Shown here: positions 4,994-55,020 of the stretch, piece by piece
How the letters are laid out: each line of letters begins with the position of its first letter
How positions within the stretch are numbered: position 1 is the stretch's first letter
From: Bugula neritina
Lineage: Eukaryota; Animalia; Bryozoa
Assembly: GCA_964035545.1 (NCBI GenBank)
Contig: OZ037765.1
Coordinates: 24,179,504-24,243,503 of the forward strand
Reading direction: 5' to 3'
Length of the DNA: 64,000 nucleotides
Translations under genes and position numbers: made by a program
The notes under the pieces: generated by a model
The model's input: the letters and a program-made list of their open reading frames with translations, nothing else
Database searches by the model: none
Told to the model about the DNA's origin: nothing

Positions 4994-7900
4994 ATGTCTT
5001 TGTACGATGATATTGATTTGGACAATAAATCTGGAGATGCCAAAAGTGACATCTGTAAGTATACATATATCCTAAATGCTACATAACATCTGCAGGTTTT
5101 TAGGCTTAAAAATTTGAAGTTGTTTAGACCTTTGAATCGCTTTTTGATCTACTTTTTATATTTTAATTGTTATCTAATGAAAAGATAGCTGCATTTTAAA
5201 TTTGCTTGCTCTGATTTTAGCCGGATGGTCAGTAGGACACAAGCTGTTGCACTCACATTCAAAAAGTAAAAAGTCGGCAATGCCTAGTTCTTCATCGCAA
5301 TCTAAGGTATTTATATTGCTTTAGCTTACAATAATGCAATGTTAAATAGTATATCAACTGAATTTTTTTCTCTCAATTGACTTTTTATGTAAACAAAATT
5401 TTGCATGTTTTAATTTTTTATAGAAGCGCCAAAATACAGCCCTGGCTCCTGTGGTGGATCTGAACAGTGGTGGAGGCATGAGCTATGGAGGGGGAGGGAG
5501 CATTGCAGCTCAAGATGGAGAAATTAGATTTAATCATATAACTGGAAAGGTCATTTTTCCCACTCTATATTGAAATAGCAGGAAATTCTTTGCTAATAAT
5601 CACAAAATTGTTGTTATATGCAAACGAGAATGCATAATTTCTTATTTGTTTATATACAAATGTTCATGTCTATAATGATTAAAGTATTGTAAAAGATATT
5701 TGAAAGATAAGTACGAGCATCCATTTGCATAACGCGATGTAAAGGAAACGCTGTGAATTTGGAAAATAAGTTAATTTATTTTATCATTAGATGGAAGCTG
5801 GTCCTATGCCGAGATCATATGCTCAGCTTGGAATGAAGACATATCCATTAAGTTCACCATTTGCTGACATGAGCATAGAATATGATCCTGGCTTTCCTAA
5901 TGAGTACTCAGATTTCTCAAAGAGGCTAAAGAAATTACGTTATCAGGAACGAGAAAGAGAAGAACAGGAACAAGAAAATGAACGGCGAAAAGAATCTGAA
6001 GAACGTCAAAAGTTAGTATTTACAGTATTTGAGCTTGAATTATTAAACATCTGCTTCATCCCTAAAGACCTGCAGTGGCTAATGCTTTATATTATATCAG
6101 TTCATATAACAAGGCTTTGTTCCTAGCTTCTTTTTTTATTGAACTGAACTTTTTTATTTCTATACTTCTATACTGCTTATTTTTCTTCTATTTAGCAGTC
6201 TGTCTCTGCTCTTTTAGTGTGCTTATCTAAGCGATTCTTTTCATTTTGTAATTTTACATGTGCTGCGTGCGCACGTCTCTGTCTGTAAAGCATGGGTTAT
6301 CTTTTGTTGAACAGAAGGCGTGAGGACGAACGTAAAGAAAGATTAGAAAAAATTGCTGCATCTTTTAAACCACCACCTAATTTGTACAACGAGTCACCAA
6401 AAGAAACTGAAAGTACAAAGAGACTTGCGTTATACGATTCATCTTCGGATAGTGACGATGATGAGAAAAATAAGTACAACAATAAAGGTGAATACTCTAT
6501 AAAGAAGATATGTGTTTAATGAAAAAATACTTGTGATATTAATATACTTTTTCGTAAATATTATCGTTCTCAGCTGTTTCTTGACTGCTTTACTAGAATT
6601 GTAGAAATATACATTGCCAGTTAACGTGTATAGAGCAAATTTTTTTTGTGTATTGTCTGTAGGAAATATGGAGTTTGCTCCACCACCAAGTCTTGTAGAA
6701 GAATCAAAACCAATGACCCCTCCTTCATACTCTAGCCCTTTGAACCAAGCTGCTGAAGATGAGCTAACAGGTTTTAAAATAGAAGGCAAAGGGTGAGTCA
6801 TAAAACACTGAAATTACAAGCAACAAGTTGTAATGATATGACAACTCCAGATTAGTGAATGGCTTATAAAGATGACTTCTGCTGATTTAAAACAATACTA
6901 TACTATGTAGTATGTGTTCAATAACTTTTTACATAACACATACTACATTGTAAAGTATTGTTGTAAATCAGCAGAAGTTGCCTTAAATAAGTCATTTACT
7001 AATGTAGAGTTGTCATATCATTGCATTAGTATTATTCCTATATATTTTAACAGCAGGTAATCAGTTTATGAGTATATTGCTTAATTGAAATTATAGTTAG
7101 CATTTATGCTATTATTTACATAGGTCAAAAATGGATTGCACTAACAAATGCATTTATTTGTTGAATGATAAATTAAATATAGGTTATGAAACTTACATAA
7201 TGCCATTAATATGGCTTACAAAATATAATGTTAAGTTGTAATAATTTAAAACTTTTCAGTGGCAAATATTTATTCAATTGAGAGTGTAGTTTTAGTAGAA
7301 CTGAAGTAGATGTACTTTGAGTCTCAATCGGAAATAAATATTTTTATAACTGTTCTGAGTAGAAGTTTTTGTGTTCTTTTTAAAGATTGCCAAGTGCACA
7401 GATGTAAATTGTTATTTAGCTAGAAGCTTTTAATTTTTTATATCTATCATTTAGGATATTTTACAAGCAGACAACTTCACATTATGCAAACTCAAGTTGC
7501 TTTTTCTCAGCATTGGTGAATTAGCACCTGCAAAGCTACTAATCATAGCAGTACTTGAAAACTAAAACCAACTAGATAAATAACAAAGTTTTTGAAATGC
7601 ATTGTAATTGCTGTGAATGAGAAATCTATAATTGTGAAACATGTTGATGTTTGTTACTTTTAGTGGAAGTGTAGCCTCAAAGATTATGGCTAAAATGGGG
7701 TATAGGCAGGGTAGTGGTCTTGGCAGAGATGAGCAGGGCATGAGTCGGGCTCTTCAGGTGGAGAAAACTAGTCGAAGAGGCGGAAAAATCCTACATGAAA
7801 AAGATATTGCTTCTAAAGGTTACTTTTACGCTATTAGGTTTTTCAGAGCTATCTATAGCTTATGTGAGATGGGAGGGTTCACATACCTTCCTTAAAGTTG

Positions 7901-10900
7901 ATAGTAGTCCATAAACAGGATCAGGGCTATTAAGCAAATACTTGACTCAATGTTAAAAAGATTAATATATGGTAAAATCCGGTGTTAAACAAACCTCGTA
8001 GTTTACATAGTTTGATTGTTTGTAGCTTTTTCAAAGGAATGTTTTCCTAAGGGAATAGAGTTAACCTCTCTTGAATAAAACAGAATAAAACAAACTCCAG
8101 GTAAAAGTTAGGCTTTGTGGGAGTTTTTGTACATGAAAGGCATATAAGCATAACCTAGAGTTTTATAACCAAAAATTAAATAAAGATAAAAAAATTCAGT
8201 TCAACATGTGCTATCAACTATTTTATAATGTGAATACATAAATTCTAAACAACTGTTGGAAGGAGAAACTATCATTATGTAAAAGTATTGTACATTTTCA
8301 TGGATAAAAGATAGTGGAAAATGCTGCCATTCTTAAATTAAACATTTTGAAATAGACAATGAGCAATTTTGACAATGGGCCGGTTTCAAAATAAAAGCTA
8401 AGCAAATTTATGGCTTTCTTTCAACACACTATAAAATATAAAATAAGGACTGTAAGCCACTGTGATACTAACCTAAAAATAAAATCACCCATTGTTAACA
8501 GTTTCACACTAGGCCTAGATTAAAAATGTCCTATGAATTCAAATGTAAGTTCCTGAAAACTAATGATTAAGTTAAGGGGAAGTGTTAATTAGATGTTGGG
8601 TAAATTTAATGCATCCATGTGGCTTGTACTAAGTCATAATAACAGTGTAGTTTGCCTCTGATAGTCATATGCATATCCTGCCATTGGCTCTACTATTTTA
8701 TATGAAAATACAAAGATTGTAAATACACTAATTACTGCATCATCTTGCATAAGCTAAAACCTACATCATTACTATTATATGGATTATTGTATGTTTACAT
8801 ACACCAGATATTATGTATTAGTGATGTCATGCTTGCTTCTCAGTTAATTGGCTGCTTCTATTTGCATTATAATTATATTTTGCTGCAGTAAAAATAACTC
8901 ATTAGAATCTATTTTTAACATGTTGACATAACCAATTCCCAAAGATCTGTCTAATTTTCAAACTTGTGTTCCATCTCTGATAGTGTGGGCTGAACAGCTG
9001 CTATATTTATTTATTGTGTAATGACTGAATGTAAGTAAGATTTCCATCTTCAATGACCTTGTGGTACCCTTTGATAAATACCTCTCTATTTAGACAAATA
9101 ATTACACCCGGATCATGGTTTGTATTATTTAAATTTTTTTTTGGATTTGGCCAAATTCTCGAGTTTTAAATTCAACTCTTTAATAGGATACATCTGATAA
9201 TACAAAGTTTATGATTATACATTTCTACTATGACTGTACTGAAGTGGGCAGTATGGTCTAAACTCTAAAGTATAAACAGTTATTTGTTTACTCTTCTGAC
9301 AATAAATTTGAATGATGTTTTCATGAAGACTGTTAAAATGCAATTAACTACGTCTACCTGTGCCTGAAAAGGCGCTTTCAAAATTTTGCGTTGGCAAATT
9401 AGCTTGAAGCATGGCATCAAACGTGCCTTTGACTAGTTGCATGGCTGGTGTGAGAAAGTATGAACAGATAGACTCTGTCTATTAGACTCAAGTATGCTCA
9501 TCATACTCTCTATGCTCATTGTTGCTAAGTGTGCCTGCTTTGTTCTCCTTGTAGAAATGTCAGCTGCCGGTGGACCAGTTAAATCTGACACCGGTGTCAC
9601 ACACACTGAATTGTTACGTAATCCCTCTAAAGTGTTACTTCTAACGGTAATAATCAATTTATCTATTTATTTTGTAAGAAGTCTCAACTATGTTTACTGT
9701 TTCTTTTCATAGCCAAAGCTTTAGAATTTAGATGTTCCATCAGATATCTTCTTGTGTCACAATATAGACGTATTAGTATACTGAGATATAAATATAAATG
9801 GCTGTCATTACTTTGGATCTATTTTTTCTATTTCTGCTTCTAAAAGTTATTGATGAGCACTAACTCAACTTGAATCTATTTTACTACTAGTTTCACTGGT
9901 TATTTTATTTATTGTTACCATGTAATACAATGTCATTAATTATAATCTCTGAACTTTGCAGTAAATTCTCAGTAAATATATTATGTTATATAATTGGTAT
10001 ATTGTTTATTTGTTTATAAAAGAACATGGTTGGACCAGGAGAAGTGGACAATGAGCTTGAACCAGAGACAGCTGAAGAATGTAGCAAATATGGAAAAGTT
10101 ATAAAGTGTGTAATATATGAGGTAAATAATGGCAGCTGAGGTTTTACCAACAAACTGACTTTGGCAAGCAGTAAGGACCTCAATCCTGCTGCTAACATTA
10201 ATTGCAGTAAAATACTGCAAAGGGGGACAGGTTTTTAAAAGAGGGAAGTTTCCGGAAAAATTTCTTCAAATAGTTCCAGCAATTGTAACACAGACTATGC
10301 AAGCAACTGTACCACAGGCTATATATACCATGAAGTGTACCTTGACGGTACTGCACATGTATTTGAATTTTTCTGTAAATACATGATTGCTGGATAAGCT
10401 TGCACCAGTTGCCCACCAACTTCTTTGTTTTGCCATATTTATATCTGGTAAATCAATATTTGTGATTTGAGTTGAGACTAATGATCAGGTGGGTAGAATT
10501 AAAGAGCAGTCCGGAAATAATGAAATCTCTTCATGTAATGATGTTCAACAAAAGAAAATTGACTTTTATGGCATAGACTACGGTTTAATGGTATCGGATT
10601 AGAGTATAATTGTGTGAAATCGATACTAAATATATCTTATTTGTATTATTATTATGGCAGAAACTATGGTGATACTTCACCAGCAGTGCAAATTGCTAAG
10701 TCAACTGTCAGCTTACGTATGTGGAGACTTGCCGTGTCAAACTGTCAGCGTATGAAGCAATCGCTGCCCTCCTCTGTATGCCAATTAATGCTTTCAGTCT
10801 GAGAAAACATAGTCAATTATATGTGATAATTACAAGTTTTGAGCCTATCGCTGTTACACAATTTCTTGTGTACAGATGCATTATAATCGCATGTGATGTT

Positions 10901-11992
10901 GGTGTCATTATGAATCCTATATTGTATATCATTTATGAATTCTGCTTGTGTTTATTATATACTTACCCTACAATGCCACTACTTTTATGATGCTTTTTTT
11001 AATACTTTTCATATATCACTAATGTTAAAAAATATGTGTTTTGTAGCTGCAAAATGTTCCAGAAGTCTTAGCAGTTCGAATATTTGTGGAATTTGAAAAA
11101 ATCTCTTTTGCCATCAAAGGTGAGCACAAAATGGTATCTCAGTATCTTCGTAACTAACAATTTTGATCTTCAGTCCATTTTATGTAATTGTTGATTGAAA
11201 AAAAATAAAAGGTAGATGTAATTCATAGATTTGATTCAAGTTGTACAACATCTCTGACGAGTTTGGAACTTTTAGCCTCTGTTCTAGTTTAAAATGTAGC
11301 AAAAGAAGTTATGTCTTCTCGCATAGCAGTATGCATAGCCTGTGCTCAAACTTTAAAACTACCCTAGTAATTATACTGTGTATTGCGGCAGTTAGGAATA
11401 GCATCAAATAAAAGTAAGCAACAATTAGTATTAGTTTACTTGGTAGCTATCAATAAGTGAATCAAAATTTCAAATTATTCGAAGACATGTGTGTCCAAAA
11501 ATTGTTAGGAAATGAAATCTCTTAAGAACACAACTCTGATACTTTTAGTATTTATAAATCATTCAATACTAACTGGGCATCCACTATTAGGTCACAAATC
11601 CTCGAGCAAGTCAAAGATAATGTTAATAAAATATTTTTTACACTTTGTTTTAGTTATAAAAAATCAAGTAGCATTTTTATGTTGCTAATTAGAAATCTTT
11701 TAGTTCTATAATGGTTTAGTCAAGCTGTTTAGAAAGTAAATGAGAAATGAAGTATACTTGGTTGTATTCACTTTCATATTCACAAACTTCTTGGAAAAGT
11801 TTTCTCCAGGATGTTATTCTTGTGGATTGAAGTTTGCCGTTGCTATTCATCAGCCCATTATATTTTGATGCGCTTTTCTTTGTAGCTGCTATTGATTTGA
11901 ATGGGAGGTATTTTGGAGGTCGTGTAGTCCGAGCTTCATTTTATTCCCATGAGAAGTTTCTAGAAATGAAATTAGATGACGATCCTTTATAA
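4994..11992 (+). CDS. RBM17: Splicing factor 45 (RNA-binding motif protein 17); G-patch plus C-terminal UHM/RRM
   Basis: N-terminus MSLYDD...GWS, SPF45 motif EYDPGFPNEY, G-patch VASKIMAKMGYRQGSGLGRDEQG, UHM NPSKVLLLTNMVGPGEVDNELEPETAEECSKYG...VRIFVEF...DLNGRYFGGRVVRASFY. Exons 4994-5054, 5221-5306, 5424-5549, 5791-6011, 6315-6487, 6663-6792, 7664-7818, 9555-9646, 10023-10121, 11047-11119, 11886-11992. Confidence 0.96.
6829..7024. repeat. About 195-bp imperfect palindrome (roughly 90-bp arms) in an RBM17 intron; MITE/foldback-like
   Basis: Left arm tgtaatgatatgacaactccagattagtgaatggcttat...acttctgctgattt...tgtagtatgtgtt pairs with right arm aacacatactaca...aaatcagcagaagt...ataagtcatttactaatgtagagttgtcatatcattgca. 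Confidence 0.85.
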
Positions 11993-13024: not shown

Positions 13025-13065
13025 GGTATAAAGCAGAGCAAATAAACCCTGCAAACTTTCATTAA
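13025..13065 (+). promoter_or_regulatory. Candidate core promoter (TATA box + Inr) of RFamide precursor gene A
   Basis: GGTATAAAG at 13025-13033 and TCATTAA at 13059-13065; the same two motifs at almost the same spacing precede gene B. Confidence 0.55.
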
Positions 13066-13250
13066 GCTACTTGCATCATTTATTCATGTCGGTCAGCGGT
13101 TTAAGAACTTATTAGACTTGAATTAGGCTAATATATAATATATTAGAGTTGCTCAGTCAAAGTTGAATGTTTTTGAGGCTTGTTTACTCTGTTGGTAATG
13201 GCATACCTGTCTCATCTTAGAAGTCTACTCTGAAATCGTCTACACTAGAA

Positions 13251-15375
13251 ATGCAACTTACATGTCCACTGCTATCTGGGGCTATTTTCATCTGGCTGGC
13301 TTGCATGTGCACAGGATTTCCCATCATCAATAACCCAAGGCTTTATAATTGTGACAAATCATCAGATAGAGAGCTTTACTATCTATGTCTGACATTGACA
13401 GAGAGTAAGTTTACTATGATACTATGTTTATGGTGGTTTCTGTTTAATAAAATAGTGGCAAACTGGTATAATTATGCGTTGTATATAGAACTGACAATTT
13501 ATATTTTCTTCTATTTTCAACTTTCGAACTATTTTGAATAAAACATAATGAGTAATTTAAATTTAATAGATATGCACATCTATGAAAATGTAATAGTAGC
13601 TTATCTTTTCATTTTTTAGAAATTGGCAACATTTTAATGCAGTTCCACTGTTCCAGGGTACATATTTCTAGGCTACTCAGCAAGCCTAACTGTACAAACT
13701 ATAGCTATATAAACATATTTTCACATTTTAAACCAAGAGCCAAGTATTCTTATTTTATGTCATAACATGCAATTTTAAAACTAATATGTTTCTAAATATT
13801 TAATGAAGTATTTTTAAAATTATTCATCAAAAACATGCATAACTTATATTTAAAGTTTTAATATAATCTTGTGCTTATATTAAGTCTACTAGAAAAGGAT
13901 CTTGTTCTGGCACTTATTTAGGTGTAGAAGTTGAGATTTTAATAGTTTAAGTTCTTTAATTTTCTTAACAAATTTTGGTTTGGGGCACAAGCTGAAGTTC
14001 TCATGAGAGCATAACTTCTTTTACTACATTTCTGATCTAAATCACAGGGTTTCCTTAATTTTTCCATTACTACACCTACCTGTGGAAGCTTGTATTTAGT
14101 AGGTCTAAAGCTATTTTAACATTCTTATTTGAGTCCGGAAGTGTTAACTACGTCATGTAAATAGTATAATTTAAATTCATTGCGCTTCTATAATTAAGAC
14201 TACAAAAAATCTATTTTGTTTTTTTAACATTCAATTTTTTTCTAACCATATATTCTGAGACATAACATACCAACCAGTTTCAGCTGTGAACTGTTTCCGC
14301 TGGGTTTATAGTCAATATATAATGTTTGCATTATGAAGTTTCAAATTTGCAATAACTGTAGCAAAAAAATATTGGTTGTTTCATTTTTAATCAAATGCGT
14401 ATGTTACCAAAATGGTAATTAAACTAAAAACAACAAGTACGGCACCTAATTTCTTTACAAAGTGTCTTTTTCATACTATTTCCTTAAGGCAATTAGCATA
14501 TACTATATTGTATTGTGTTTGAACAATTGTTGATGTTCTAAATCTATAAACATGTTTTTCTTCCTTTGAATCCCATTTCTATTACCTAGTTTAAGATTTC
14601 ATATATAATTGAAATTTCAGTGATGGATGCAGATAGAGAAAAGTATAATAATCCCTATCAAAGGCAGTGGGAGTCACTATATTTTTCTGGCAGCAACACT
14701 AATCAACTGAACTACCTTGCCAGGTACAAGATATATAGGTACAGTTACACATTACCATACTGCACCACACCATGCCGTACCATACTATATAATACTATAC
14801 TACACCATATGCTATATCATAACTTGTTGGCCGCACCCTGCTGTATCATATGTGCATTAAAACCACACATATAAACCGAATGCATATATATTAAGGCATC
14901 TACATTTTTGTTTCAATTAGAGAGCAATGTTGGCTGGCCTCATAAGTTAAAAATCAGGTTTCTATTTTTGTTTAATGAATTCTGTTTTAGTTGAATGACA
15001 TTATTTATTTAGTGTCAAGTTTTTTAGTTAATTTAAAAAAACATGCTAGCATATAGGAGGCTTATTCGTGATTGCTGACTGATGCTTAAACATAAAATGT
15101 CCTGAGGCTGTGGGTATCTCATTTTTAATTAAGGTAGATATCAATTATGAAACGATAAAATTTCCCCTGAGAGGCCAATAATCACAAAACAGCAACTCAC
15201 CTTTTCACAATCAGGTCAGACTAAAGTGACAATTTGTTTAGAAAACCTGCCATACTCATTGTCAATTACGGTTGACTCATTTTTTTACAGAGCCTTGAAC
15301 TATCCAGATGCACAGAAACAGCCTACCTTCACTAATAAAAGAGTTGAAACTGGACATTTCAATAGATTTGGCTGA
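13251..15375 (+). CDS. Neuropeptide precursor A (113 aa): signal peptide, Cys pair, C-terminal KR-VETGHFNRF-G-stop, predicting VETGHFNRFamide
   Basis: Exons 13251-13404, 14621-14723 and 15291-15375 (342 nt, phases 1 and 2 consistent). Hydrophobic N-terminus MQLTCPLLSGAIFIWLACMCTG, C-x11-C, dibasic KR site, amidation Gly directly before TGA. A possible 15-nt in-frame micro-exon lies at 13643-13657. Confidence 0.8.
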
Positions 15376-16339
15376 ATGTTGTTCTAAAAACTATATCTAA
15401 GTTTTACTCGTTTAATTTAGTCAAGTTTACCTGTGATTTCACATGACTGTAGATGTAATATATGTTATAAGTCTTGTTTTAAATGTTTTTAATTCATATT
15501 ACTATAGTTTGAGCTATATTATGATGCACGGTTCCTGCTAATAATCTTAAACCATTATAAAGTGCATTGCTTTTATCATAGTATCTTGTTATAAACTTTA
15601 TATAAAACAATAATAATAATAGTAACAATAACATATAGGCTAGTATTCAAATGCTCATTTGTTGTGCATGTCATGTTGTTTATCTAAGTTATAATTTTAT
15701 ATAATATTATAATTGCTAAGGTTATAGCTATTCTATTGGCAGTTCAAAAACTGCAAGGGCTTAAAATTTGCTAGTAAATTTTAAACCCTTGATCTTTCCA
15801 ACATTTTTTGATTATTATAAATATTTTGTGTCACTAAACAGGTTTTGTTATATACCTAATATCATAATAATTACTATATTATATTATAGTATGAGCAGAA
15901 ACTTATACAGAAATAGATATACTTATTTAGCATAAAATTTTTTATTATTTCATCATTGCTATGTTCAGCCTATGCTGACGGAAGCAACTGTCTATGCTGT
16001 CCTATGAAACACTCAGCATGTAATGATGCCTTATTTATTGGCAGCATACAAAGAAAACTGTTTAATGCAGCTTATTACAGGTTGATGCAATTACATTGAA
16101 TCCTGTTGACTTTTCCTCTACAAAAGTGACTGCATTCAAACAACCCGATAACAATTCAATTAACATATGTAACCCACATTTCTCATTTAGCAGAAAATCT
16201 ATAAACTAACCATTATGTAAGCACCTTTATAACTAAAAGTAATGAAAAATATAGACAGCATAAAAATTGAGAAATAATTTACGAGCTTGATGATGGTGTT
16301 TCCTCTACCCTTTCTGTCCCAAGAGGAAAGACATTTGTT

Positions 16340-16456
16340 GGTATAAAGTGTACATTCTCACCACTGTGCATATCATTAATAAGTTCTCTACGAATAAAGC
16401 TAGACTAAGCCAATATTTTTATTTGGAGAGTAATTAACAAGCTTAGTAATTTGAAG
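16340..16456 (+). promoter_or_regulatory. Candidate TATA box, Inr and non-coding first exon of RFamide precursor gene B
   Basis: GGTATAAAG 16340-16348, TCATTAA 16373-16379, consensus donor AG|GTAAGT at 16456/16457, acceptor TTTCAG ending 16785, 14 nt before the ATG. Confidence 0.6.
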
Positions 16457-16799
16457 GTAAGTATGATATAGAATTTGTGACTTTGCTGCTAAATCCAATT
16501 TCAATCTAGGATATACTAAATTTAATTCTGTTCTGTAGTATGTAACACTATTACAAATTATTATAATATAGTGTACTTAGTGCTTGCTTTAGCATTATAT
16601 AAAATTGAATGTTTGCGTATCAAGTAAATCAGATAATATTTACCGGGAAAATTTTTAGCTCATACTAAGTGCATTTAATAGGTTTTGGAAATTAATAATG
16701 TTAGCAGCTATACAGCGGACTGAATTTAATTTATCAAATCTTATAAAGAAGAAATAGTGAATCACAACACATGACTATGTTTCAGAACAGCTAGGAACC

Positions 16800-17999
16800 A
16801 TGTACAAGAAGGTTATCTTGATAGTAGCAACTTTTGCAACTATTGGAAGCATTTTAGCAGCCCCTGTGATTGAAGACAGCTCAAGTACCATATATGAAAG
16901 AGTTGAACGTGCTAGGCACCTGTGTTTGAATGCTGAAACAGATTTTTTCGATGCCATTTTGTGTGAAATATTGTTTCAACATGAAAATGTGACACCATAT
17001 TTACCAGGTAAGTTTGAATAGTACTAATTTAGTCATGACCCAATCAGTAATATAAAAATTATAATTTAAAGTTGTATTTCAACCTAGTAAATTTTATAGC
17101 TAAAAAACTTGAGAACTTCTAAATTTAGTTATCCTAAATGTATGTTCATTAGAAATTCGTATTGGGTTTGACATTACTGTAAGATGCCATTTAAAGCGTT
17201 GTGCAGAGTGCTAACTTGAATTGATACCTAAAAATATGCATTCAGATATTTTTGTCTTTCTAGATTGTCACATATTTCCCATCTTTAAATGCAGTAACCG
17301 ACAAATTTCAATAGCTTAAAGGTTTTTTTTAGTTTTAGCTCCAGCCTAAAATCTTGCAAACAAACAACTTCTTTCAAGATATTTATTCCCACCAGAAAAC
17401 AGGATTTTTTAGATTTCTTCATTACTGCCTCTACCCCGTTCTCTACACTGTTCAAAATACAATGCTGAGTGCAATCTTTAGGTCTCAGCTTTTAAAATAA
17501 ATCAAAAAAGTCTTATGTAGGAGAAAATACTTAATAAATGAAGCATCAAAACCTTTCAATGACAAAGGTTTTCTGTATATGGGTATAATAAGTATGAACA
17601 AAACTAAATCTGACTAAATTATAGTGAGATCAGTAAAGCTTACCATGCCGTGCATTATTATCAACTATATTCTATACGTGCTAAAATTACTACTATTGAA
17701 TTTAATAGCACAATAAGATACTGTACTTTATTATGGTAATTTAATGAATGCCTTTTTTAAGTTGAGAATAAAACTGCTGTGAGTAACAAGCTTTACTCAC
17801 CTGTTTGTAATGTAACTTGCTGTGGTTAAATCTAAAATGAGTTTTTATCTTTTTTGGGGTTTTAGAATCTGCAAAAAGAACTGGCCCTAAAAATCCCAGA
17901 CCAAAACTCTCTCCTTATGGAAATTTGCTTTCCAACGTGAGATTTGGCAGGAAAAGAAGAAATAGTTTAGCTGCTGCTGCGCATCCCAAGTCCAACTAA
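16800..17999 (+). CDS. Neuropeptide precursor B (113 aa): signal peptide, Cys pair, KR-TGPKNPRPKLSPYGNLLSNVRF-G-RKRR, predicting a 22-residue RFamide
   Basis: Exons 16800-17007 and 17866-17999 (342 nt, phase-1 intron with GTAAGT donor). Signal peptide MYKKVILIVATFATIGSILA|APV, C-x12-C, KR cleavage, RF-G followed by polybasic RKRR. Confidence 0.85.
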
Positions 18000-20580: not shown

Positions 20581-21300
20581 CTATCAAATCTCAAAGCTAA
20601 CTGAATGCTTGATAAACTAACAGTATGTCAACACAGTTACATAGCACTTTCAAAACCACAACATAATTACTTTGACAGCATAATTGTATCGCTATAACAT
20701 TCCGTAATATAAGGCTACTAGAAGGTATGAGTCATGGGATAATACAAACATAGCTTTAGTAAACAGATACAAACATTTCATGTATATTATCAGTAAACTA
20801 TGTGACAAGTGAGATTGCAGATTTTGGGGTCTTTCAATGACTTTAAGGACAAGTTTTAGAGTAAAGCAACGAACAAAAACCATAAAGTTTGTATTGTTAC
20901 CTTCTTCATATTTCACATAATATTAGCCAATAACTTTCATTGTATAATTGTAATCTAAAATAAGTGCAATAAATCTTTAAAGTGGAACAAATGAATGACA
21001 AAATAAACTTCCATATGTTATCTGTACAAATAGTATGCATCAATAATTATTGTCTCAACTAGTTATGATAACGTAATTTATTTAGATTTTATTAGAAAGA
21101 CATTAATATATACAATGCAATAAGCTTATAACTAGATATTAAATAATCAAACCGAGACTGCAGTTTTTTATTGTTTGTTCTGCTAACACCTCTGTGTTTT
21201 ACATTAACTTATCTAAACAATTTTTCCACTAAGTTTATTGACTCTTATAAATAAAGATAAGCCAAATTTATGATTAGAGTTAAAAGTGGTGACTAACTAT

Positions 21301-21582
21301 CCCCTCATTTACACTTTGCCGTATCGTAAGCCATAACGTAAAATATCAGCCATTTTGTCTGAGCTTCCTGTACGGCCTTGCGGTACGTTAAGATCAAGCA
21401 CTGCTTGATTCAAACAAGTTGGACAGAAAAACTTTTGCTTCAACTCATTGGATATAATTGTCCAATGAAGTGTCATATATACCGTACCTAATAGCGGACT
21501 TTGAAAACTTTAGCCTGGACACATTAAAAATGGCTGATATTTTACGTTGCAGCGTACGATACGGCAAAGTGTGAATGAGGGG
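21301..21582. mobile_element. MITE (282 bp) with about 56-bp terminal inverted repeats
   Basis: Left CCCCTCATTTACACTTTGCCGTATCGTAAGCCATAACGTAAAATATCAGCCATTTT vs reverse complement of right end CCCCTCATTCACACTTTGCCGTATCGTACGCTGCAACGTAAAATATCAGCCATTTT. No coding capacity; TSD not clear. Confidence 0.88.
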
Positions 21583-22369
21583 AAAAGCTGTGGCCCTTTT
21601 TTGTAAATGCATTGTGTCTATGTATTATAATGATTATAATATGTATGATATAGCTTGTGCCGATCCTCAAATTGCTATGCAGCATATAATAGTTCTTCGC
21701 ACTCTGTAGGATTTTGTACATTCAACTCCAAGCATAACGTATATATCATTTTATTGCATGATATTATAGTGAAATGCATATGGCAAAAGAACACTTGAAA
21801 TTGAATTGATTGGTTGAATTTGGCCAAATTTTGATTTATACAATTAGCATAAGCAGACATAATTGAGAAGTTCCTACTGCTGATGCAATTGTTGGACCAA
21901 AATTATCTCACTTTTATAGGCGTTTCAACTCTCCACAATTATATATCTCAGCTTATTTTTTCATAAGAATTGCTTGCAAAGGCAATCCATTTCAACTTGT
22001 GACGAGTTGTCCTGTTTAGTTAAGGTAGGATAACTCTCATAGTACGTGGTGTAATCAAAGCGTATAAATTTACCGTGTGCATGAAGACTTGTGCGGAAAA
22101 ATTCCGGTCGGGCTACACCCACTCAAAGGGCATAATATATAATTATGTCACTCTGCACCCACTAATGACCGAATGTACGAGGTAATGAAAGCCCTATATT
22201 CATCACAAAGTTTGAGTCACTGAGTGCAAACTTTGTGTACACATATATTACAACCCCCTCCGAACCACTGCAGCCACCCCAAACTCTGTGCTACATTAAG
22301 TCAATTTCATATTGATACGATGCGTGCAAACCTGCAAGTGTAAGTCACTTGGCTGCAGCAGTAGAACTA

Positions 22370-23723: not shown

Positions 23724-26700
23724 ATGCCAACAAACAAAGATATTGCTGCTGAGCGAGCAAACTCAACTATCAGCGCCAAAGACTTGACATTTACATTGTA
23801 TGGTAAAGATGGGACATATAGAAGAAAATTGGCTTGTATGTTCATTTCATTCGGATTTCTGAATTACTGTATGATATAGTATTAACGGGCACAATACATA
23901 TGGCTGTAGAGTTTACTGACAAATATAAGTACTCTTTTTCCAAAGCAAATGTAGTTATGTTATTTGGAAAATATATTACGGTTTTTTTGTTACTAAGCAT
24001 GGTTTTACCCTCTAATAGTTTTTTTTAGTTGAGAGAGCCGATAAGAATCAGGCTTTTGCAAAGTCTAAAAAGTTTTTACTGATGGATCGTGATGAGTTGT
24101 ATGATGAAGCCATACGTATGGAGACGGTTGTCACTCAATGTTTGCAGGAATATGGGTATAATAATTCCAAAGATATGCAAACATTTCTTGACCGAGGGCA
24201 CTTTTTAAGGTATAATAAATAATTATTGCGCTATATCTGTTGTAATTTAATAAAACATATGTTTGAAATATCTAATTTTACAGTTGAGTTTGCTGTTCAT
24301 ATCATTTTCATATGTGCAAAAATTGTCTAGTACAAGGATGCAAAAATAATTTTAATTTTATGTTTTATGCTTTATTAAATTTTGTTTTTTTTTATAGCGC
24401 AGTTTTTCTTGGTGTTCACCCATTTGCTATTCATTTTGGTGCATTTATACCGAGTATTCTGGGCCAAGGCACGCCTGAGCAGATCCAGAAGTTTCTCCCT
24501 GAAGCTGAGTGCATGGAGTACATTGGTACATATTGTCAGACGGAACTTAGTCATGGTGTGTGTACAATCCTATCTCTTGTATAAAACTGAATTATGTAAC
24601 GCTAGACTTAGGATCTTAAATATTACAAACTGGCAAGTATTAAAAGTTGTTCCTTCGTGGTCTCAATATTGCCAAACATATTCTCCAGGCTCATTTGTAA
24701 GAGGTTTGGAGACTACAGCTACCTATGATAAGAGTACTGAAGAATTTATTCTACACACTCCTAACCTTTCTGCCATCAAGTTTTGGCCTGGTGGGCGTAA
24801 GTATAGTTTCTTTTTCATAAAAATATTACATAATTTCTTGTATTTTGTCTGTTGAACTGACAAAAACCCAGAGCAGTTTTTATTACACTTGATTTCAACC
24901 AAAATGAATATTTTTTGCTGCAGCTTTTTTCTATTAAACTACTTTACTCAAACTCAGGATTGTGTGCTTCTCAAGTCAACACAGTTCATTCATTTATTCA
25001 ACCTAAAATCTAAATTTAGTAAATCTAGAGAATCTTTAAATAATTTTGCTCAATCTAAAAGTTTCAAATTTTTAAAAACACAAAGAAAACATTTCTTAAA
25101 CTTTATTCTCTAAAATTGATGCTCTCTTTGATGGGGCAACTTATTCTTAATTTATAAAGTTAAAAATTACTGTTGAAAAATATTTGCACTATCAAAAAAA
25201 GGTTGTCTAATTAATAATATGAAGTAATTTTTTTTTTCCTAAAATATAAAGAGTTGAAATAATTTTAAAAGATTAGCTACATCTATTGGGAAATATTTTT
25301 AGCCATGTGTTTATTTTTGAAAAAATGCCCAACTCAACATTTTTTAAAAACAATTGTAAGAAAAAGTTCTTTAATTTACATCAACTCAGTATATGAAAAA
25401 TATAAATAGACTATTTTACCAAGTTTTAACATGAAAGCTAGTGTGACAATGTTTTAGAAACATTTCTTCTTATATTCTTAGTGGGCAGATCTTGCAACTA
25501 TGCAGTCCTTATGGCCCAACTAGTAATAGATGGAAAGAATTATGGAATTCATCCATTTATGTGTCAGTTGAGAGATTTAAACACCCACCAACCACTTCCA
25601 GGTTAGATTGTTTATAGTCTGGACTCTAGTTGAACAGTTTGTATATTGTTATAGTGTGTTTTTAAATGCCATTTTTTTGTATTTTAAATGTTATGTTTGA
25701 CCATCATTTATCTTTTTTATGAAACATTTTGCTGGGTCACTTATGTAACTTACTGATTTTAGTATGTATGCAATTTCTGTTATATTTTAGTATGTATGTA
25801 ATTGTCTGTTGAATGATGTTGTTTAGGTGTAGAGGTGGGTGACATCAACTATAAATTTGGTGGGAATGCACTTGATAATGGCTACCTGATATTGACTCAC
25901 TACCGAATTCCTAGAACTAATTTACTAATGAAGTATGCACAGGTAACTGGCTGATTTAAATTTTTGTTTATTTTACTTACTTTACTCCTGCAGTTTTGAT
26001 TCATTTTTCTGTTTTAAATCATCTGTCAACACAATATACTTATAGCTAGCAGCTATTTATTGTCTTTAAACTGATACTCTATAACACATTTAGGACTTGA
26101 CTTCTACTCTGTTCATGCTGCTAAACTTTCATTGGTTCACCAGGTATCACCAGATGGCTCTTACACTAGACAGGATGTTCCTCCTCAAATAGCTTACCTT
26201 TCCATGACTTTCCTCAGAACTATTCTGGTCACAGCAAGTGCTAGCAGTCTTGCTAAGGCTGCTACTATTGCCACAAGATACAGCGCAGTTCGAAGACAGA
26301 CTGCTAATAGAGATGGGTATGTATCAATGCATCCCTTAGATAAGTCCTACATTCACTTGACTCCTTAGCTATTTTTTGGTGGCAGATTTTATAGGTATGT
26401 TTACTCCTTGCTTATTTACCATCTCATTTATTGCTAAATAATAGCTGAGTGCAGGTGAAGGCAGCTGAGGTGTGTTGCAATCCCCTCATGTTTGTTGATA
26501 GAATTGAACCACAGATATTAGACTACCAGACACAACAGATGAAGCTGTTTCCAGCCATTTGTACTGCATATGCTCTACACTTTTCTGGAGCTGCTTTACA
26601 GTGTGCATACAACGACATACTTGTATCTGTTGGTAACGGGGATATGTCTAGACTAAGTGAAGTATGTGTGATACAAGAACTATTTTAACTGCTAAATTAT

Positions 26701-32895: not shown

Positions 32896-35800
32896 ATGTA
32901 TAACTATACCATATACTTAATACTTGGCTCCTTTCTAATAACTTCTTCATTTGAATTGGAGCAGCATGCTGCGAAAAAAGCAAATTTAAATCGAAGTCTG
33001 TGGCCATTGAAAAGCTCAGATTCATTGAAATACTCACTGAAATTTCAATATACTTATAGCACTGCCTACTTCACTCTTCCTGTAAGTATTATTAAGTTTA
33101 CTGCTGACATTGAATTCAATGTCGAATTTTACTCAGTCATGTAAAAAGTTACAATAACAATTGTTATAATTTCCAATGGATTTTAAAGTTAAACTTGAAG
33201 TTAAAGTTAAACACTAACTTAGTAACTCTAACAGTTGGACTTGGCGTTACACTTTTGGTATGTTGTATGAGTATCACATTCACTGCCGTCTATCACTGTA
33301 TCAGTATGACTATGGGTGATACTAGCAGTAGCAGTGTGAGTGTAGCTCGGACACTAACACAGTAACACTAACTGTAAGTGTAACAGCCAACAACTACAAG
33401 GCTTGAGCGAACTTGGTAAATTAATTCTTTTTTATAAATTATATAAACGGTTGGTATTACTAAAATAAAAAGTATAAGTTAATGCTAGTACTTAATCACA
33501 GTAGCCGTAGCTGTCATTGATAAATTCAAATAGTTTGATACTTGAACTTGGGCCAAGTAAAGCACTTGGTTAATTTTCACATTGTTGCACATGACAACTA
33601 ACAACTCTCTGATTATATTGTCTCTTAAGATGCACTGAAAAGTCATTATATTCTACAAACATTAGTATCAACAAAAACAAGCCATTTTTATTTTTTAGTG
33701 GGAGAAGGGGGTGCGAATATGCTATTTTATGTTCACTGTTCTTGGTTTAGAGTTTGGCATACGACTGTTTTATTAGTTTACAGTAATACTAACAATTGTG
33801 TGTTAGCTTTTTGCTGAAGAGCTGATTTCTAAACCTACCTTTAAACCTACAATGACAGTGTTGAAACTATCCACAATCTACAATTTTCAGCCTAATAAGA
33901 AAATAAATTTATTAGGAATAAAATAATATACAACTTTCAAACACAATGCAGCTGCTAAATTACAATTATGACATTTTAATCCACAGGTTGACCACTTTGG
34001 TTTTGCCACTACAGACACATATCAAATGAGGTATTTATACAATATGGACTATTGGGACAAAAATGGCGGACCGATTTTGTTTTATTGTGGAAATGAAGGA
34101 GATATTGAAGACTTTGCCATTAATACGGTAAGCTAGTAATTGTAGAAGAAACTTTATTTAGTGTGATCTTGATAATGGTGAGATGACAGAAAAAGATTTA
34201 AATGGTTATTATATTATATGTATTTACATCTTTAGCTAAAGTTACCACAGCAATTTGTATGTCACTCTGTTGAAAAAATTTTGACTTTTAAACTTGCAGC
34301 ATTCTTTCTAAACACTTAGGCTATATTTACTTTTCAGTAACTTGTGTTGCTATCAATTTTGTAGGGGTTCATGTGGGACATTTCTAAACAGATGAAGGCA
34401 ATGGTGGTGTTTGCTGAGCATAGATATTATGGTAAATCATTACCATATGGAGACAAGTCATTCAAGGTCAAGTGATAAAATGCTAGTTTTTAATAATTGG
34501 TTTAGTTATATGCTGATCAAAAAAACATGCTTTTTATATCAACAATTTTGTATCTAACGTCAGCTGGTTGAAGCTGCTGAATTTCTAACTCTGCTTGTAT
34601 AACCAGTTATAATATAACATTGCATATGCTTTAATACAGGATGCTGCCCACTTGGGTTATTTGACAGCAGAGCAAGCTTTAGCCGACTACGCCGTGTTCT
34701 TGACCTCATTCAAGGCCACTACAGCTGGTGCTGCCAATAGTCCAGTGGTTGCTTTCGGCGGGTCATATGGAGGAATGTTGGCTGCTTGGATGAGGGCAAA
34801 ATATCCTCAAATAATCATTGGGTTTGTTTGGTTTTTCTCTATACATCTCAATAAATGCCATATCAAGACCTTTTTAAAACAATGTATTACTCTCTGTCTA
34901 AGTATAGCATGTGGCAGTGTTGGTTTGACATATTTTATGGTAAACTGGAGTCAGACTCAGCAGAATGATGGTAATGTCGTAACGAGCATTCAATCTAAAT
35001 GTTTCTTGTATCACTTTCAAGTTGTTAACCAGTGTGGTTTAATTATAAAAACAAATTTTGTCAGGATATCAAAGGAACCATAGCCTAAGCAAACTTGAGC
35101 TTTTGTCACAATTAATACATACATGTATATATTTTGCCGTTTTACAGGGCACTGGCAGCTTCTGCCCCTGTGCTGCAGTTTGAAGGAGTCACCCCATGTG
35201 AGGCGTATAATGAGATTGCCACAAAGACATTCGCCAGATATGGCTCTAATTGTGTTGAAAATGTTCGGAAATCGTGGAAAGCTATGACTGACCTCTACAA
35301 TTCTGGCGGTATAACCTGACCTGCTTTATACTCTTCTTACCTGTTTTATCTCTTCTTACCTGCTTCATACTCTTCTTACCTGCTTTATACTCTTATTACC
35401 TGTTTTATCTCTTCTTACCTGCTTCATACTCTTCTTACCTGCTTTATACTCTTCTTACCTGCTTTATACTCTTCTAACCTGCTTTATACTCTTCTTACCT
35501 GCTTTATACTCTTCTAACCTGCTTTATACTCTTCTTACCTGCTTTATACTCTTCTTACCTGCTTTATACTTTTCTTACCTGCTTTATACTCTTCTAACCT
35601 GCTTTACACTCTTCTTACCTGTTTTTTTACTCTTATTGGTGCAGTTTTCCATATGCACATAATTAGCCTCCTATAGTTTTACTTTTTGTGCTTTGGATGT
35701 TGTGAACAAAGCAGGTTTCAAGAGAGTGACAAGTTAGTAAATGTGACCGTATCCTTTCCAATACTTTTATGTCATAACTTTGCTATATGCCACCATGTTG

Positions 35801-37448
35801 AAACTGTCCATGTATCACATCACCTACCATATTACTGTTGCAAGCTACTGGATGTGCTATTCTGCATATTATAGCCACTGGACAAGCATACCTTAAGAAG
35901 GCCTTCAATCTGTGCGGTGACGTCAAAACTACGGATGACCTGGCAGCTCTGAAAGGGTGGCTGACAGGTGCCTGGGGAAATATTGTCATGGTGGAGTACC
36001 CCTACCCTGCAGACTTCCTGCAACACTTGCCTGCGTGGCCTGTCAAAGTATGTGCTAATATCTAGGTCTAATGTATATATCTCTTTACTCAATTAGATTT
36101 TTGTAATGTGAAGGCAAGTCCACTTAGTTAAGCACCTCTACCGCCTATAAAGTGAGTTAGACTTTTACTATGGCTGCTTTGGTTTCTTTTATACCTGTAT
36201 ATAGTGTTTAGTAGTATAGTTTATTGTGATACAACAATAAAGCTTCTATTATAAATGATATTTCAGGGTGTGTGTGATATCCTGCAGCAGCCATATTGGG
36301 ATAATCCTTCTACTCTAGTAACTCAAATATCATTGGCTGCTCAGGCATTTTTCAACTACTCCAACAGCTTTAGTGGGAGCTGTTTCAACACGACTTCCGA
36401 ACCAGACAATCTGGGTGCTGATGTGGGCTGGGGCTTCCAGGTAAGTGTGTCAAGTATAAGAATAAGACTTCTTGAGAATAACGCCATGTACTTTTACTAG
36501 AGTTGCAACACCCAAATAAACTTTCTGGCCAATGGTTACATACTTTATAAGGTACAACCTATTAAAAATTGTTTTAAATTTTTCTTGACATTTAAAAAGC
36601 ACTATTTTGCTAAGCATACTTGGAGTATATTTCTAAATTTGAACTGTTGACATGTAACGTTGCTTATTGTATGCTAGGCTTGCAGTGAGATGATCATGCC
36701 AATGTGTGCCGACAACAAGAATGACATGTTTGAAGCCTCGGCCTGGGATCTCGCCTCCTACATCAAAGAATGTGCGAAAAATTATGGAATAGTCCCCAAA
36801 CCCAACTGGATCATGACCAACTTTCTCGGTGTGAATATTACCGGGGCAACTAATATTATATTTAGGTGAGCTGCATTAATGTGTATATAATTTATTGTAG
36901 CTTTGGTTCTCTCTTTACACAGAGTTGTGTGTTTCCTCCTTTTACATCTTGTCATTTTTAGAGTGTTTTTAAGAAGTAGCGGATGCAATAATCGGTGCAA
37001 TGATTCGCTTGCAATAAGCTATAATAATAATAATACTAATGATAATTTGAAGCTGTTCCTATCCACCTTAGTAGCTACAGGAAGTCCTCATCATGTCATA
37101 TTTTCATTATTTCAGAAATTCAACAAGTATACATTGCATGTTTTGTTTTCATCAAGAGATGCAATTACTTGCTGGTCATTGGCTAGAGATATCCAGATGT
37201 TTCTTGTTAGCTTTCCTGTAGTACTGTACTATTTCTGTAGCAATGGTCTTCTGGACCCCTGGCATGGCGGAGGGGTGCTGAGGAGTTACCCTGAGCAGAA
37301 CATCACTGCTATTATCATACCTAACGGTGCTCATCACTTAGACCTCAGAGGACATAATGCTGCTGACCCCGTGGATGTTATTGCTGCCAGAGATATGGAG
37401 ATCGGCATCATTACTCAGTGGATTGCTGACTATCAGAGAGAGCATTAA
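32896..37448 (+). CDS. PRCP: Lysosomal Pro-X carboxypeptidase (peptidase S28)
   Basis: Signal peptide; VDHFGF, GGPILFYCGNEGDI, VFAEHRYYGKSLPYG, YLTAEQALADYA, catalytic Ser in GGSYGGMLAAW, EYPYPADFLQHLPAWPVK, WGFQACSEMIMPMC, Asp in NGLLDPW, His in GAHHLDL. Nine exons, first 32896-33081, last 37241-37448. Confidence 0.95.
35319..35636. repeat. Minisatellite, 20-bp unit ACCTGCTTTATACTCTTCTT, about 16 copies, in a PRCP intron
   Basis: Direct tandem array with minor variants, starting about 10 nt after the exon 5 donor. Confidence 0.95.
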
Positions 37449-50700: not shown

Positions 50701-53700
50701 GTACAGTAAAGTTAAGTGATATAAAAACAGCTCACCATTTAAAATCCTTCATATTTAAATACTGCTGAGCATATAATATAACTAGACTTATTGTTTGTAC
50801 TAGCATACCAAGGAAAGTTCATCTAGTTTACTTCTAGCATACTCTAGTTGTGTCCTCTCCACGTGCTCATAAGGTGTATGAGCTAACAATTCATGAAGAG
50901 CCAAAATATACTTGGGTATCTGAAAAACAAAATTTTGACAGAATATTAATAAAAATAAACTTTAGCAGTGTGTATGCATAGTGATGTAAGCTTCCAGTGC
51001 TTTAAGTTCTTTTTGAAACAACTGCAACACTGATTAAAAAAGTTTTACATAGTGGGTGTTAATATGTATATTGTGTTATATAGTTACATTGCATAGAGTT
51101 ATGCTGCATTTCTTTATTGAGTTTTTCACTGTATTATTAATTATATTAATGATGAATGTATATTATTTAGTATATATAGAGTGCATAGCTGTATTTTCCT
51201 ATGATGCATGATTATTAAGAATATTAGGATTGATACTACAGTGCTTGGCTCTTACTGTCTCCAATAAAAGAAAGGATTCGATAAATTAACATACAGGCTT
51301 TGCAATAGAATACAAGAAAAATAACTAATATAATGTTATGTAAGTGGGATAAAACAACTCCAATACCTGGTGCATAGGGTATGTGAGAAACGTTTCAAGA
51401 ACTCTATTCTCACAAGCAGGTTTTTCTTCAAACCTTTTGAGCAGAGAGTTAAATTCTGGTTTCTGTTTGTATTCTGTGAGCACTTGAAGACTGTAGTGGT
51501 GGTTTCGGACGTATTCCTGGTAGATGCCAAGCATGGGCAGCAGCATGTCAAACAGGTCACCTTGTAATGACATCATAGGTTTACATTATTTTTACTGATT
51601 TTTAGTACACTATTGTATGTGGCATTACTATGTATTAACGTAACTTTTAGCAACTAACCAATGACTAGTGTAGGCCAGTTTTCCATCCGTGCGGTCAGAC
51701 CTTTGAGAAATATTTGATGCAAGAAAAGAACAGTCTCACTGCAAAATTATGTCATGTTTTATTTTCTTGCAACGTTTAAGCAAATGTCATTCGAAGCAAG
51801 TCCACCTACTAAATGTCAACTGTTCATCTAATGCCCATTGCACAAACCCATGCATACAACAATTATCACCTAAAAGTTAAATTGCATTAAATATTGCAGT
51901 GTGTTTAACCTGTTGAGGAATATGGAGTTGACATCATCGTGTGATATGACTGGTTTCTTGGAACTGGCAGCCATTCTCAGGGGTCTTAGAAAGCATGTAA
52001 CTAGTGTGGACAAGTCCCTAACATAGTCTTCTTCGTCTTCCACCATTCCTGTGAGTAGGAAACACTAGAATCACAGTCTATCACTGTGCTGGTAGCGGTT
52101 TGTATAATTGTGAAACAACCACTTAATGTAGTATTACTTTATACTGTGATCTGTTTTCTAGAGATATACAAACTTCAATTTTCGACAGAAATGCATTTAT
52201 TGCTGACTAAAGGTGGGCACTCATGGCAAGAAGGCAACGATAAAGACTGAAGTTTTATATTTACGCTATTAGTTATTTATTTTCATATGTGGACTCAGTT
52301 TAATAAACATATTGGCCGTTTTTTGATCTTGAACTTTGACCTAACCTGAAGACACCTAAATTGCAGTATATTGATAATATTGATAAGTTCTACTTGCCAA
52401 AGACTACATTATTTCTGGTCTTCATACTCTCTGCATGTGGTGACTTTATGTACATCTCAACTATCTGTTTCCATCTTCTGCGGCATAACCAACCCCGAAA
52501 GAAGCTCTGCACCTGTTAGTTTCACATAAAAAGTGCTTAAATTGAAAGGAAGAATTAATTAAAACACATTATAGTAAAAATTTTGTTTGCTATACACATG
52601 CATGCATATGATAAGGTTGGTAGCTTGCTTGAAACATCCTTGAAATGAGAATGGGCTTGGTCGAAAGCATGCTATGAAACAGGAGTGAGCTTGAGCATAT
52701 GGGTGTTTGAATTTAGCACTATGCTAGTTGCTAGGCTACGAGTGAGCACTCATTACTCAAGTTTAATAAATGCACATACCATTTATTATTCATGATATGA
52801 TAAGTCACTATATTTTATATTTCTAAATTCAAATAATGAAAAACACAGCTCTGTGTCTTCTTGGAATACATTATCAAATATAATTGAGACAACAATACAT
52901 GCTAAATATATGCATGAAAGTAGATTCATATAGTATTTTTAGTACCATGTAAATAGTTTTGAAATTTTTAAGTTTTTATCAGCTACAACCAGTTTAAAAG
53001 GTGGAAGGTGTGTAAAAGGTTCCTCACTAATTTGTTAACTATAAAGTTTCATTATTATTTTCTGCATGATTCCTATTTATGATACAATTTTTAGTCTATA
53101 TAGTTCAAATTAATAAAAGGGCATTTTATTTTTTTAGATAGGAAAATACAAAAACATAGATCTTGAATAAAACACTATTCCAACTATTTTTAAAAGAAGG
53201 AATAGTCTAATCACATTGAAAAACCTGGTAAATTTTTTTGATTAATTGCAACATTGCGCCAAAGATTTTCATGCCCTAAAAGGGGGTATTTTATAGGTAA
53301 TAGTTTATGACTTTAAATTTAAAGTGTACCATCCATATTAGTATGATAACAACCAGAAAAAGGTTAATTAGTATACATGCTAGGATTAGAGAACATGAAT
53401 AATAATACTATATAGTAGAATTAGCTGTGAAAAAATGAATTGATGTAATATATTACTCAAAAACGACATCATTTGAAATCTGAAAAAGTTTAAACTATGT
53501 TCACTATTTGATCAATAGGTTTCTTAAACTTAGAAAAATCTTGGTTTTGATGCGAGCACATCATTGGGGAAGCTATAAAGGTTGTTAGTTATACAACAGC
53601 AAGACACAACTTCTGAAGTGAAAGAAAAACAGCTCAGAAAATTAGCTAGCATATAAGGTAGAGTGATTCTTCATCCATGAAAATGTCTCAAATGTGTGAG

Positions 53701-54487
53701 TTTTTAAAGTAAACATGCATTAATGTCTAGCTTTATAATAAAAAATATGTGTCATGTAAACAGTTATACAGCAAACAAACTACACTGTGACAAAATTGGG
53801 TCAGCTAGAGAATGCATTCTAATGGGATGCTAGCATCTAGTTTCTACATAAAGCTAGAAAACTAATAGTGGGAACTCAACACACGCCGTTACCTTAGCTA
53901 CCACCTCAGTAGTTACAGGTGGATCTGAATCCGGAGAGGTGTCTGGCTGCTTGTAAAGATGGTTAAGCAGAGACATAATAGGTTACATAATCAGCAACAT
54001 AAAATAAGCATAAGTATAGTGGTAAGTCAGAAATTTAAAGAGCCCTAACAGAAAGAAATAGACAGAATTTAAAAAAACATTAGAAATGTGTGAGGGTAGA
54101 AAACTGTACAGAACTAAATGACGGGATAACGTAAAAGACTCTATCATTTATTTGAAAGAGGATATTTAGAATATTGATCTTCAATAAACATTGTGATCAA
54201 CATCTTTTGTTGTAACCACTAACCTTTTTAATTTTACAAATTTCTGTGTACTCCTTTTCTTTCTGCTTGTTAACTGTTTCTACTTTGTATTTTTTCAACT
54301 AAAATTTAAATAAAATTATTTAATCACCCTTGTTCAATTACTGCAACTGTTGCTAAGATGTTAAGTCTAAATATGATTTTTAATTATGCCATATTTTGAA
54401 TTAGATATATACATAATATAAAATAATATTATTTGAAATAGAAGACAAGAGTGAAAACCACACAAACACACGCACACACACGCACGC

Positions 54488-54530
<43 letters not shown>

Positions 54531-54940: not shown

Positions 54941-55020
<80 letters not shown>

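Follow-up and report, generated by a model that had tools for sequence, protein, structure and literature searches.

In a 64,000-nucleotide stretch of the Bugula neritina genome (contig OZ037765.1 of assembly GCA_964035545.1), referred to below as the window, two small adjacent genes lie on the same strand, flanked by an RBM17 gene and an acyl-CoA oxidase gene. A preliminary description of the window, made from its letters, had proposed that these genes, here called gene 1 and gene 2, each encode a precursor of one neuropeptide ending in Arg-Phe-amide (RFamide). In this report we describe their structure and conservation and weigh the families to which they could belong. The genome that contains the window is 216 Mb, uses the invertebrate mitochondrial code, and is approximately 84-88% identical to the B. 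neritina reference genome, to which comparisons with B. neritina refer unless another sequence is named.

Both genes are on the plus strand, and their models were verified one exon at a time with codon phase tracked. Gene 1 has three coding exons. Exon 1 (13251-13404) begins with a putative signal peptide of about 22 codons (13251-13316), carries a pair of cysteines with the spacing C-x11-C (Cys34 at 13350-13352 and Cys46 at 13386-13388), and ends in a phase-1 donor. Exon 2 (14621-14723, phase-2 donor) encodes propeptide with monobasic Arg sites. It also holds a possible spacer peptide: a stretch that begins with Gln and is bounded by single Arg residues (14623-14723) could be a second, non-amidated product. 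The coding part of exon 3 (15291-15375) consists of further propeptide, the dibasic site KR (15337-15342), the peptide VETGHFNRF (15343-15369), a Gly codon (15370-15372) and TGA (15373-15375), and the precursor thus ends in KR-VETGHFNRF-G-stop. A TATA-like box at 13027-13033 is a weak candidate for the promoter, because two of its nucleotides are missing in the B. neritina assembly.

Gene 2 is preceded by a putative promoter and leader region (16342-16456), in which a TATA box (16342-16348) is followed by a probable noncoding first exon with a GTAAGT donor at 16457. This TATA box and leader exon are kept in three B. neritina sequences. The first coding exon (16786-17007, with the ATG at 16800) encodes a putative signal peptide at about codons 1-20, then Cys42 (16923-16925) and Cys55 (16962-16964), which form a C-x12-C pair, and ends in a phase-1 donor. 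In the last exon (17866-17999), KR (17874-17879) is followed by a 22-residue RFamide peptide (17880-17945) ending in LSNVRF, a Gly codon (17946-17948), the tetrabasic site RKRR (17949-17960), a short tail and TAA (17997-17999).

The two genes have much in common. Every intron has GT-AG boundaries, each coding region comprises 339 nucleotides (113 codons), Leu directly precedes the second Cys, and a phase-1 intron follows the Cys pair. The first 20 or so residues of each precursor are hydrophobic, with small residues at plausible cut sites, and on hydropathy both N-termini are signal-like. A dibasic site, a peptide, and Gly followed by basic residues or a stop codon are present in both genes and are conserved between species. 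Each gene has one RF-G, and no other occurs on the plus strand between 11.9 and 24.3 kb. When we searched the 64 kb for KR followed by RFG and then a basic pair or a stop codon, exactly two matches were found, which are the two genes; 40 windows simulated with a third-order Markov model contained none. In single-sequence AlphaFold models of the propeptides, the second Cys falls within a helix, at low confidence (predicted local distance difference test score, pLDDT, 59), and a low-confidence model of the B. neritina ortholog of gene 2 is a helix-loop-helix.

The shared architecture claimed in the preliminary description stands with respect to the Cys pairs, the phase-1 intron and the KR-to-RF-G arrangement, but not in every respect. 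The equal length of 113 codons is fortuitous: in B. neritina, the product of gene 2 has 104 residues. Also, gene 1 has an additional (second) intron, and the distance from the Cys pair to KR is about 55 residues, versus 17 in gene 2. BLASTP detected no similarity between gene 1 and gene 2. The earlier suggestion that they are old, highly diverged duplicates is consistent with their layout and adjacency, from which we infer an origin by tandem duplication.

Both genes are conserved in B. neritina. Gene 2 corresponds to KAF6031641.1 (A0A7J7K108, "hypothetical protein EB796_010051"), which has 104 residues, is 80% identical and belongs to the only cluster matched by gene 2 exon 1. It has the exon structure and flanking genes of gene 2 but a shorter tail, lacks a neuropeptide annotation, and fits the 17007/17866 junction. 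In B. neritina, as in the window, the neighbors of this ortholog are a G-patch gene on one side and an acyl-CoA oxidase gene on the other. All exons of gene 1 are likewise present in the B. neritina reference, in the same order, and are unannotated there. All splice sites, cysteines, KR sites and RF-G motifs are retained, against a background identity of about 88%.

Within gene 1, exon 1 is 85% identical to B. neritina with a ratio of nonsynonymous to synonymous differences (pN/pS) of 0.33, and exon 2 is strongly conserved (94% amino acid identity, pN/pS 0.11). The cassette encoding the peptide is identical in 12 of 12 codons, and the peptide is also unchanged in B. neritina metagenome contigs. 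Taken as a whole, gene 1 has a pN/pS of 0.29 and is under purifying selection (P ~3e-5 against a neutral rate of 12%); for gene 2 the ratio is 0.55. In the gene 2 peptide, 6 of 22 residues differ in B. neritina, where it ends in LTSMRF, and KR, G and RKRR are retained; it shows no synonymous changes, although these numbers are too small to call positive selection. The variability of peptide 2 (17880-17945) beside the invariant DNA of peptide 1 may reflect fast divergence between cryptic species, with the same small numbers.

Some observations would fit a partly mistaken annotation, in which gene 1 is decaying or exons are used alternatively within one locus, for example by splicing of 13404 to 17866, both of which are in phase 1. 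Exon 1 of gene 1 has a 1-nucleotide deletion in the B. neritina reference (VXIV02001583.1; positions 6320-6335 of the extracted stretch), which may be an assembly error or a real loss and probably explains why gene 1 is not annotated there, and the TATA box of gene 1 is damaged in the same assembly. No canonical polyadenylation signal occurs in the 625 nucleotides after the gene 1 stop codon. Moreover, Lymnaea FMRFamide transcripts have a common first exon and alternative peptide exons. However, purifying selection extends across gene 1, and its frame is intact in the window genome and in a second individual, which is approximately 98% identical and has no frameshifting indel in the coding exons of either gene. 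Gene 2 also comes with a separate start: a conserved TATA box and leader exon, an ATG and a putative signal sequence. We regard such a mistake as quite improbable. With exons in phase, cassettes that did not arise in simulation, and junctions kept in B. neritina, the proposal of two adjacent RFamide-precursor-like genes is upheld, and both are very probably real precursors of amidated peptides.

With regard to ancestry, we favor the view that both genes are reduced, tandem-duplicated descendants of the spiralian FMRFamide gene, to which we assign a probability of roughly 0.5. One part of the argument is the Cys pair. Judged by eye, the FMRFamide precursors of spiralians show a C-x9..15-C pair close behind the signal peptide, and the residue ahead of the second Cys is hydrophobic, in most cases Leu. 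Both Bugula genes have this arrangement after their putative signal peptides. Such a pair is found in the FMRFamide precursors of three phoronids, of three of the four brachiopods for which the N-terminus is available, of three nemerteans and of Platynereis (supplements of PMC8557429 and PMC3890597). The precursors compared include those of Phoronis, Lingula, Laqueus, Hemithiris and Lineus, as well as that of Novocrania, which has no Cys pair.

The peptides and their flanks supply further likenesses. Peptide 1, ending in GHFNRFamide, resembles the extended peptides AGGHYMRFamide of Platynereis and ALAGDHFFRFamide of Mytilus, all being of an H-aromatic-x-RFamide type. In molluscan FMRFamide precursors, a tetrabasic site separates an N-terminal domain with extended peptides from the repeat domain (PMC4208409), and gene 2 stops soon after its own tetrabasic RKRR. 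An RFamide flanked by dibasic sites and provided with a Gly donor is common to FMRFamide precursors and the Bugula genes. FMRFamide precursors have been found in nemerteans, brachiopods and phoronids. Those that are known are long, carry many [FY][ML]RFamide repeats and are encoded by one gene, whereas Bugula has two tandem genes, each with one peptide and about 110 residues. On the view favored here, the ancestral gene would have been trimmed to its N-terminal domain, made up of the signal peptide, the Cys pair, one extended RFamide and a basic site. The repeated tetrapeptide domain would have been lost, and the remaining gene would then have been duplicated in tandem.

Also, a canonical FMRFamide gene was not detected elsewhere in the genome. 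Four degenerate DNA patterns for a multi-copy gene gave genome-wide counts at or below those of reversed-pattern controls and no clusters, and none of the 20 best single FxRFG matches in the genome was precursor-like on inspection. As a positive control, the same method recovered a seven-copy FDSIG gene with zero control matches, and it also found the exon of neuropeptide F (NPF). The FDSIG/pedal-peptide gene (contig C3, 27770559-27770875, plus strand) has at least seven motif copies and matches the published BnFDSIG-like gene. The NPF gene (contig C4, 19884.4-19885.6 kb, minus strand) matches the published BnNPF-like peptide, and its intron interrupts the Arg codon that precedes FGKR. A scan with PF01581 matched nowhere, including in the controls, and so adds nothing. 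An earlier transcript survey recovered no FMRFamide transcript in Bugula, yet FMRFamide had been located by antibody in previous work (PMC4990251). Given the Cys pair with its Leu, the likeness of peptide 1 and the missing canonical gene, the statement in the preliminary description that neither peptide was recognizable as FMRFamide was probably too strong as an exclusion. In Bugula, these two genes may well take the place of the FMRFamide gene.

A number of points weigh against descent from the FMRFamide gene. The likenesses of Cys pairs and peptides to published precursors were judged by eye, no homology of the two genes to an FMRFamide precursor has been scored statistically, and two cysteines followed by a helix make a simple motif. 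The consensus of FMRFamide-related peptides (FaRPs), aromatic-[FMIL]-RFamide (PMC4208409), is violated at the second position by gene 1 (F-N-RF) and at the first position by gene 2 (N-V-RF, or S-M-RF in B. neritina). Because the peptides miss this consensus and neither gene carries multiple copies of [FY][ML]RFamide, we do not file the genes as members of the FMRFamide family. The pattern tests see only motifs within one exon, and split or divergent motifs and unassembled DNA are missed. Genome-wide patterns for tandem short neuropeptide F (sNPF) and myomodulin repeats were likewise blank, so such an absence is not peculiar to FMRFamide, and Bugula may have lost or remodeled several repetitive RF-, RY- or RL-amide precursors. 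Searches for relatives point the same way: Pfam found no family for any exon; phmmer with gene 2 exon 1 against 1.84 billion representative proteins returned the Bugula ortholog together with a repetitive protein that we regard as a chance match; and word-index searches led back to Bugula alone with gene 2 and were empty with gene 1. In the ESM Atlas, the B. neritina gene 2 protein matched myosuppressin clusters at ranks 1 and 3 (scores 0.92 and 0.90), with a nematode FARP cluster ranking sixth. The lack of a polyadenylation signal after gene 1, noted above, belongs to the same side of the balance.

Many of these results would also suit an independent RFamide family confined to bryozoans, with a layout that is convergent or goes back to an ancestor that is no longer recognizable. 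This corresponds to the undescribed family considered in the preliminary description. No sequence match extends beyond Bugula: NCBIfam returned for the B. neritina gene 2 protein one bacterial family alone, far under its cut-off, and two metagenome scans returned nothing. Searches of the window genome itself found no paralogs, and both genes appear to be single-copy. Gene 1 exon 1 had no match in the ESM Atlas, and a fold search of the Atlas from low-confidence models was uninformative, with template modeling (TM) scores of at most 0.37, normalized by query. As to the peptides, neither is among the 11 Bugula neuropeptide precursors of PMC4990251, and motif searches found no match in the supplements of Thiel 2021 or among approximately 1,300 spiralian precursors. 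Both peptides appear undescribed, in agreement with the preliminary description. The strict FaRP consensus, which neither peptide fits, is a further argument for independence. However, such searches have little power for precursors that are short and evolve fast, and Bugula is the sole bryozoan sampled. Three features also converge on FMRFamide: the Cys module, the way peptide 1 ends in H-aromatic-x-RFamide, and the failure to find a canonical gene. An independent family is a reading that we consider possible but rather unlikely.

A different relationship is suggested by layout. Arthropod myosuppressin precursors are, like the Bugula precursors, about 100 residues long, and combine a signal peptide, C-x15-C with V-C-x-x-L, KR, one FLRFamide, and Gly with a basic end. 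Both Bugula genes have L-C-x-x-L, and both have the putative signal peptide, the Cys pair and the single C-terminal RFamide after KR. The preliminary description had noted this likeness to myosuppressin, which agrees with our comparison of insect precursors and with the top ESM Atlas match (0.92). The genes could thus be spiralian members of the myosuppressin type, acting on a receptor of the myosuppressin/myomodulin clade to inhibit muscle. The lack of tandem myomodulin by pattern and the presence of candidate receptors in the genome (see below) would suit this assignment. But the xDxDHVFLRFamide motif of myosuppressins is absent, the Cys spacing is 15 rather than 11 or 12, and myosuppressin is not described from spiralians, whose accepted counterpart is multi-copy myomodulin, which has no Cys pair (PMC8557429). 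Furthermore, the top Atlas match has 155 of 256 features in common, and neuropeptide S and DH31 follow close behind. The closeness of these other families suggests a generic short-precursor signal, and we treat the myosuppressin ranking as a lead. On balance, membership in the myosuppressin type seems doubtful.

The likeness to both families could have a common cause. In a bolder form of descent from FMRFamide, which we regard as unlikely, Bugula exchanged its repetitive FMRFamide precursor for two single-peptide genes built from a unit of one Cys hairpin and one RFamide, and this unit is common to arthropod myosuppressin.

Divergent membership in another known family, such as sNPF/LFRFamide, RFLamide, sulfakinin, CCRFamide, luqin, NKY or NPF, has a few resemblances to recommend it. 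Peptide 2 is loosely similar to the insect RFLamide PASAIFTNIRFLamide and to GNLFRFamide of Sepia, the patterns found no sNPF tandem elsewhere in the genome, and in insect RFLamide precursors, as in gene 2 of the window, an N-[IV]-RF core sits in a lone C-terminal peptide with a Cys pair upstream. Each of these families nevertheless differs in layout, and we find such an assignment very improbable. RFLamide precursors are longer, have C-x28-C directly before RKR, and yield an RFL-amide ending. CCRFamide has four Cys inside an RFamide located right after the signal peptide. Luqin and SIFamide have the peptide near the N-terminus and the Cys pair C-terminal to it. Lophophorate sNPF/LFRFamide, sulfakinin and NKY precursors have no Cys pair, and those of sNPF/LFRFamide and sulfakinin carry multi-copy [LM]FR[FY]amide or DY-G-x-GGRFamide. 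NPF/NPY precursors have a long peptide directly after the signal and an intron in the last Arg codon, and the Bugula NPF gene is a separate one (contig 4, near 19.885 Mb). Myomodulin precursors contain multi-copy RLamide or RMamide without a Cys pair after the signal peptide, and HanSolin also differs in layout.

Whatever the family, the expected processing is conventional. KR is a prohormone convertase site, carboxypeptidase trims the basic residues, and PAM converts Gly to an amide. Each precursor would accordingly enter the secretory pathway, be cut at KR (and, for gene 2, also at RKRR), lose its basic residues and be amidated at Gly, with one predicted product per precursor: VETGHFNRF-amide from gene 1 and the 22-residue peptide ending in LSNVRF-amide from gene 2. 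The pair might thus be the two-ligand signaling locus suggested in the preliminary description. Within the propeptide, the two cysteines might clamp a helical hairpin by a disulfide bond. Neurons may release the peptides, which may signal through RFamide G protein-coupled receptors (GPCRs) of the rhodopsin type on muscle or ciliated cells. The genome has at least 20 loci for GPCRs of the PF10324 type, a family that includes the protostome RFamide/Wamide receptors. Signaling of this kind has been shown for brachiopod FLRFamides (PMC5577450), and lophotrochozoan FMRFamide type-1 receptors have been described as orphans.

Additional features of the locus and genome are as follows. The 3' part of the RBM17/SPF45-type gene (7641-11992, plus strand) includes a G-patch exon at 7641-7892, detected by Pfam, and its translation ends at a last-exon stop codon near 11990. 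The exon of the acyl-CoA oxidase gene at 24312-24581 (plus strand) matches Pfam Acyl-CoA_ox_N. In a read set that behaves as DNA and shows no splice joints, very high read depth and many loose ends mark 13820-14187, approximately 17290-17405, and sequence from 18333 onward as high-copy interspersed repeats, which occupy introns of the two genes and the downstream region. A 284-bp element at 21300-21583, with 57-nucleotide terminal inverted repeats that are 91% complementary, is probably a miniature inverted-repeat transposable element and has no aligned counterpart in the B. neritina reference. On the plus strand, 34652-37448 contains exons of a peptidase S28 gene (prolylcarboxypeptidase/DPP7-like), and exons matching RhoGEF and PH domains lie at 51325-57960 on the minus strand. 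Outside the window, contig C17 (12213-13505; 48% guanine plus cytosine) encodes a bacterial cbb3-type oxidase subunit and represents symbiont or contaminant DNA. A full-length match to mitochondrial COX1 on the large contig C6 (11174072-11175412) is a nuclear insertion or an assembly artifact, and lower-scoring COX1-like sequences on contigs C214 and C73 may stem from other organisms.

Antibodies to FMRFamide are a standard marker for bryozoan nervous systems. The two genes described here, together with NPF, are candidates for what these antibodies stain in Bugula, and their peptides may cause part of its FMRFamide-like immunoreactivity. They also yield two peptides that could be synthesized and applied to the muscle and to the swimming and settling larvae of a major fouling species. 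If descent from FMRFamide is correct, Bugula would represent an unusual loss of a repeat architecture that is kept across spiralians. The Cys pair is common to spiralian FMRFamide and arthropod myosuppressin precursors, a correspondence of which we found no discussion in the literature searched. Should both derive from one unit of Cys hairpin and RFamide, the two kinds of precursor would constitute a single family, and the pairing of myomodulin with myosuppressin would be called into question. In that case the peptides could serve as ligands of lophotrochozoan RFamide receptors that are now orphans, for instance those of the FMRFamide type-1 clade.

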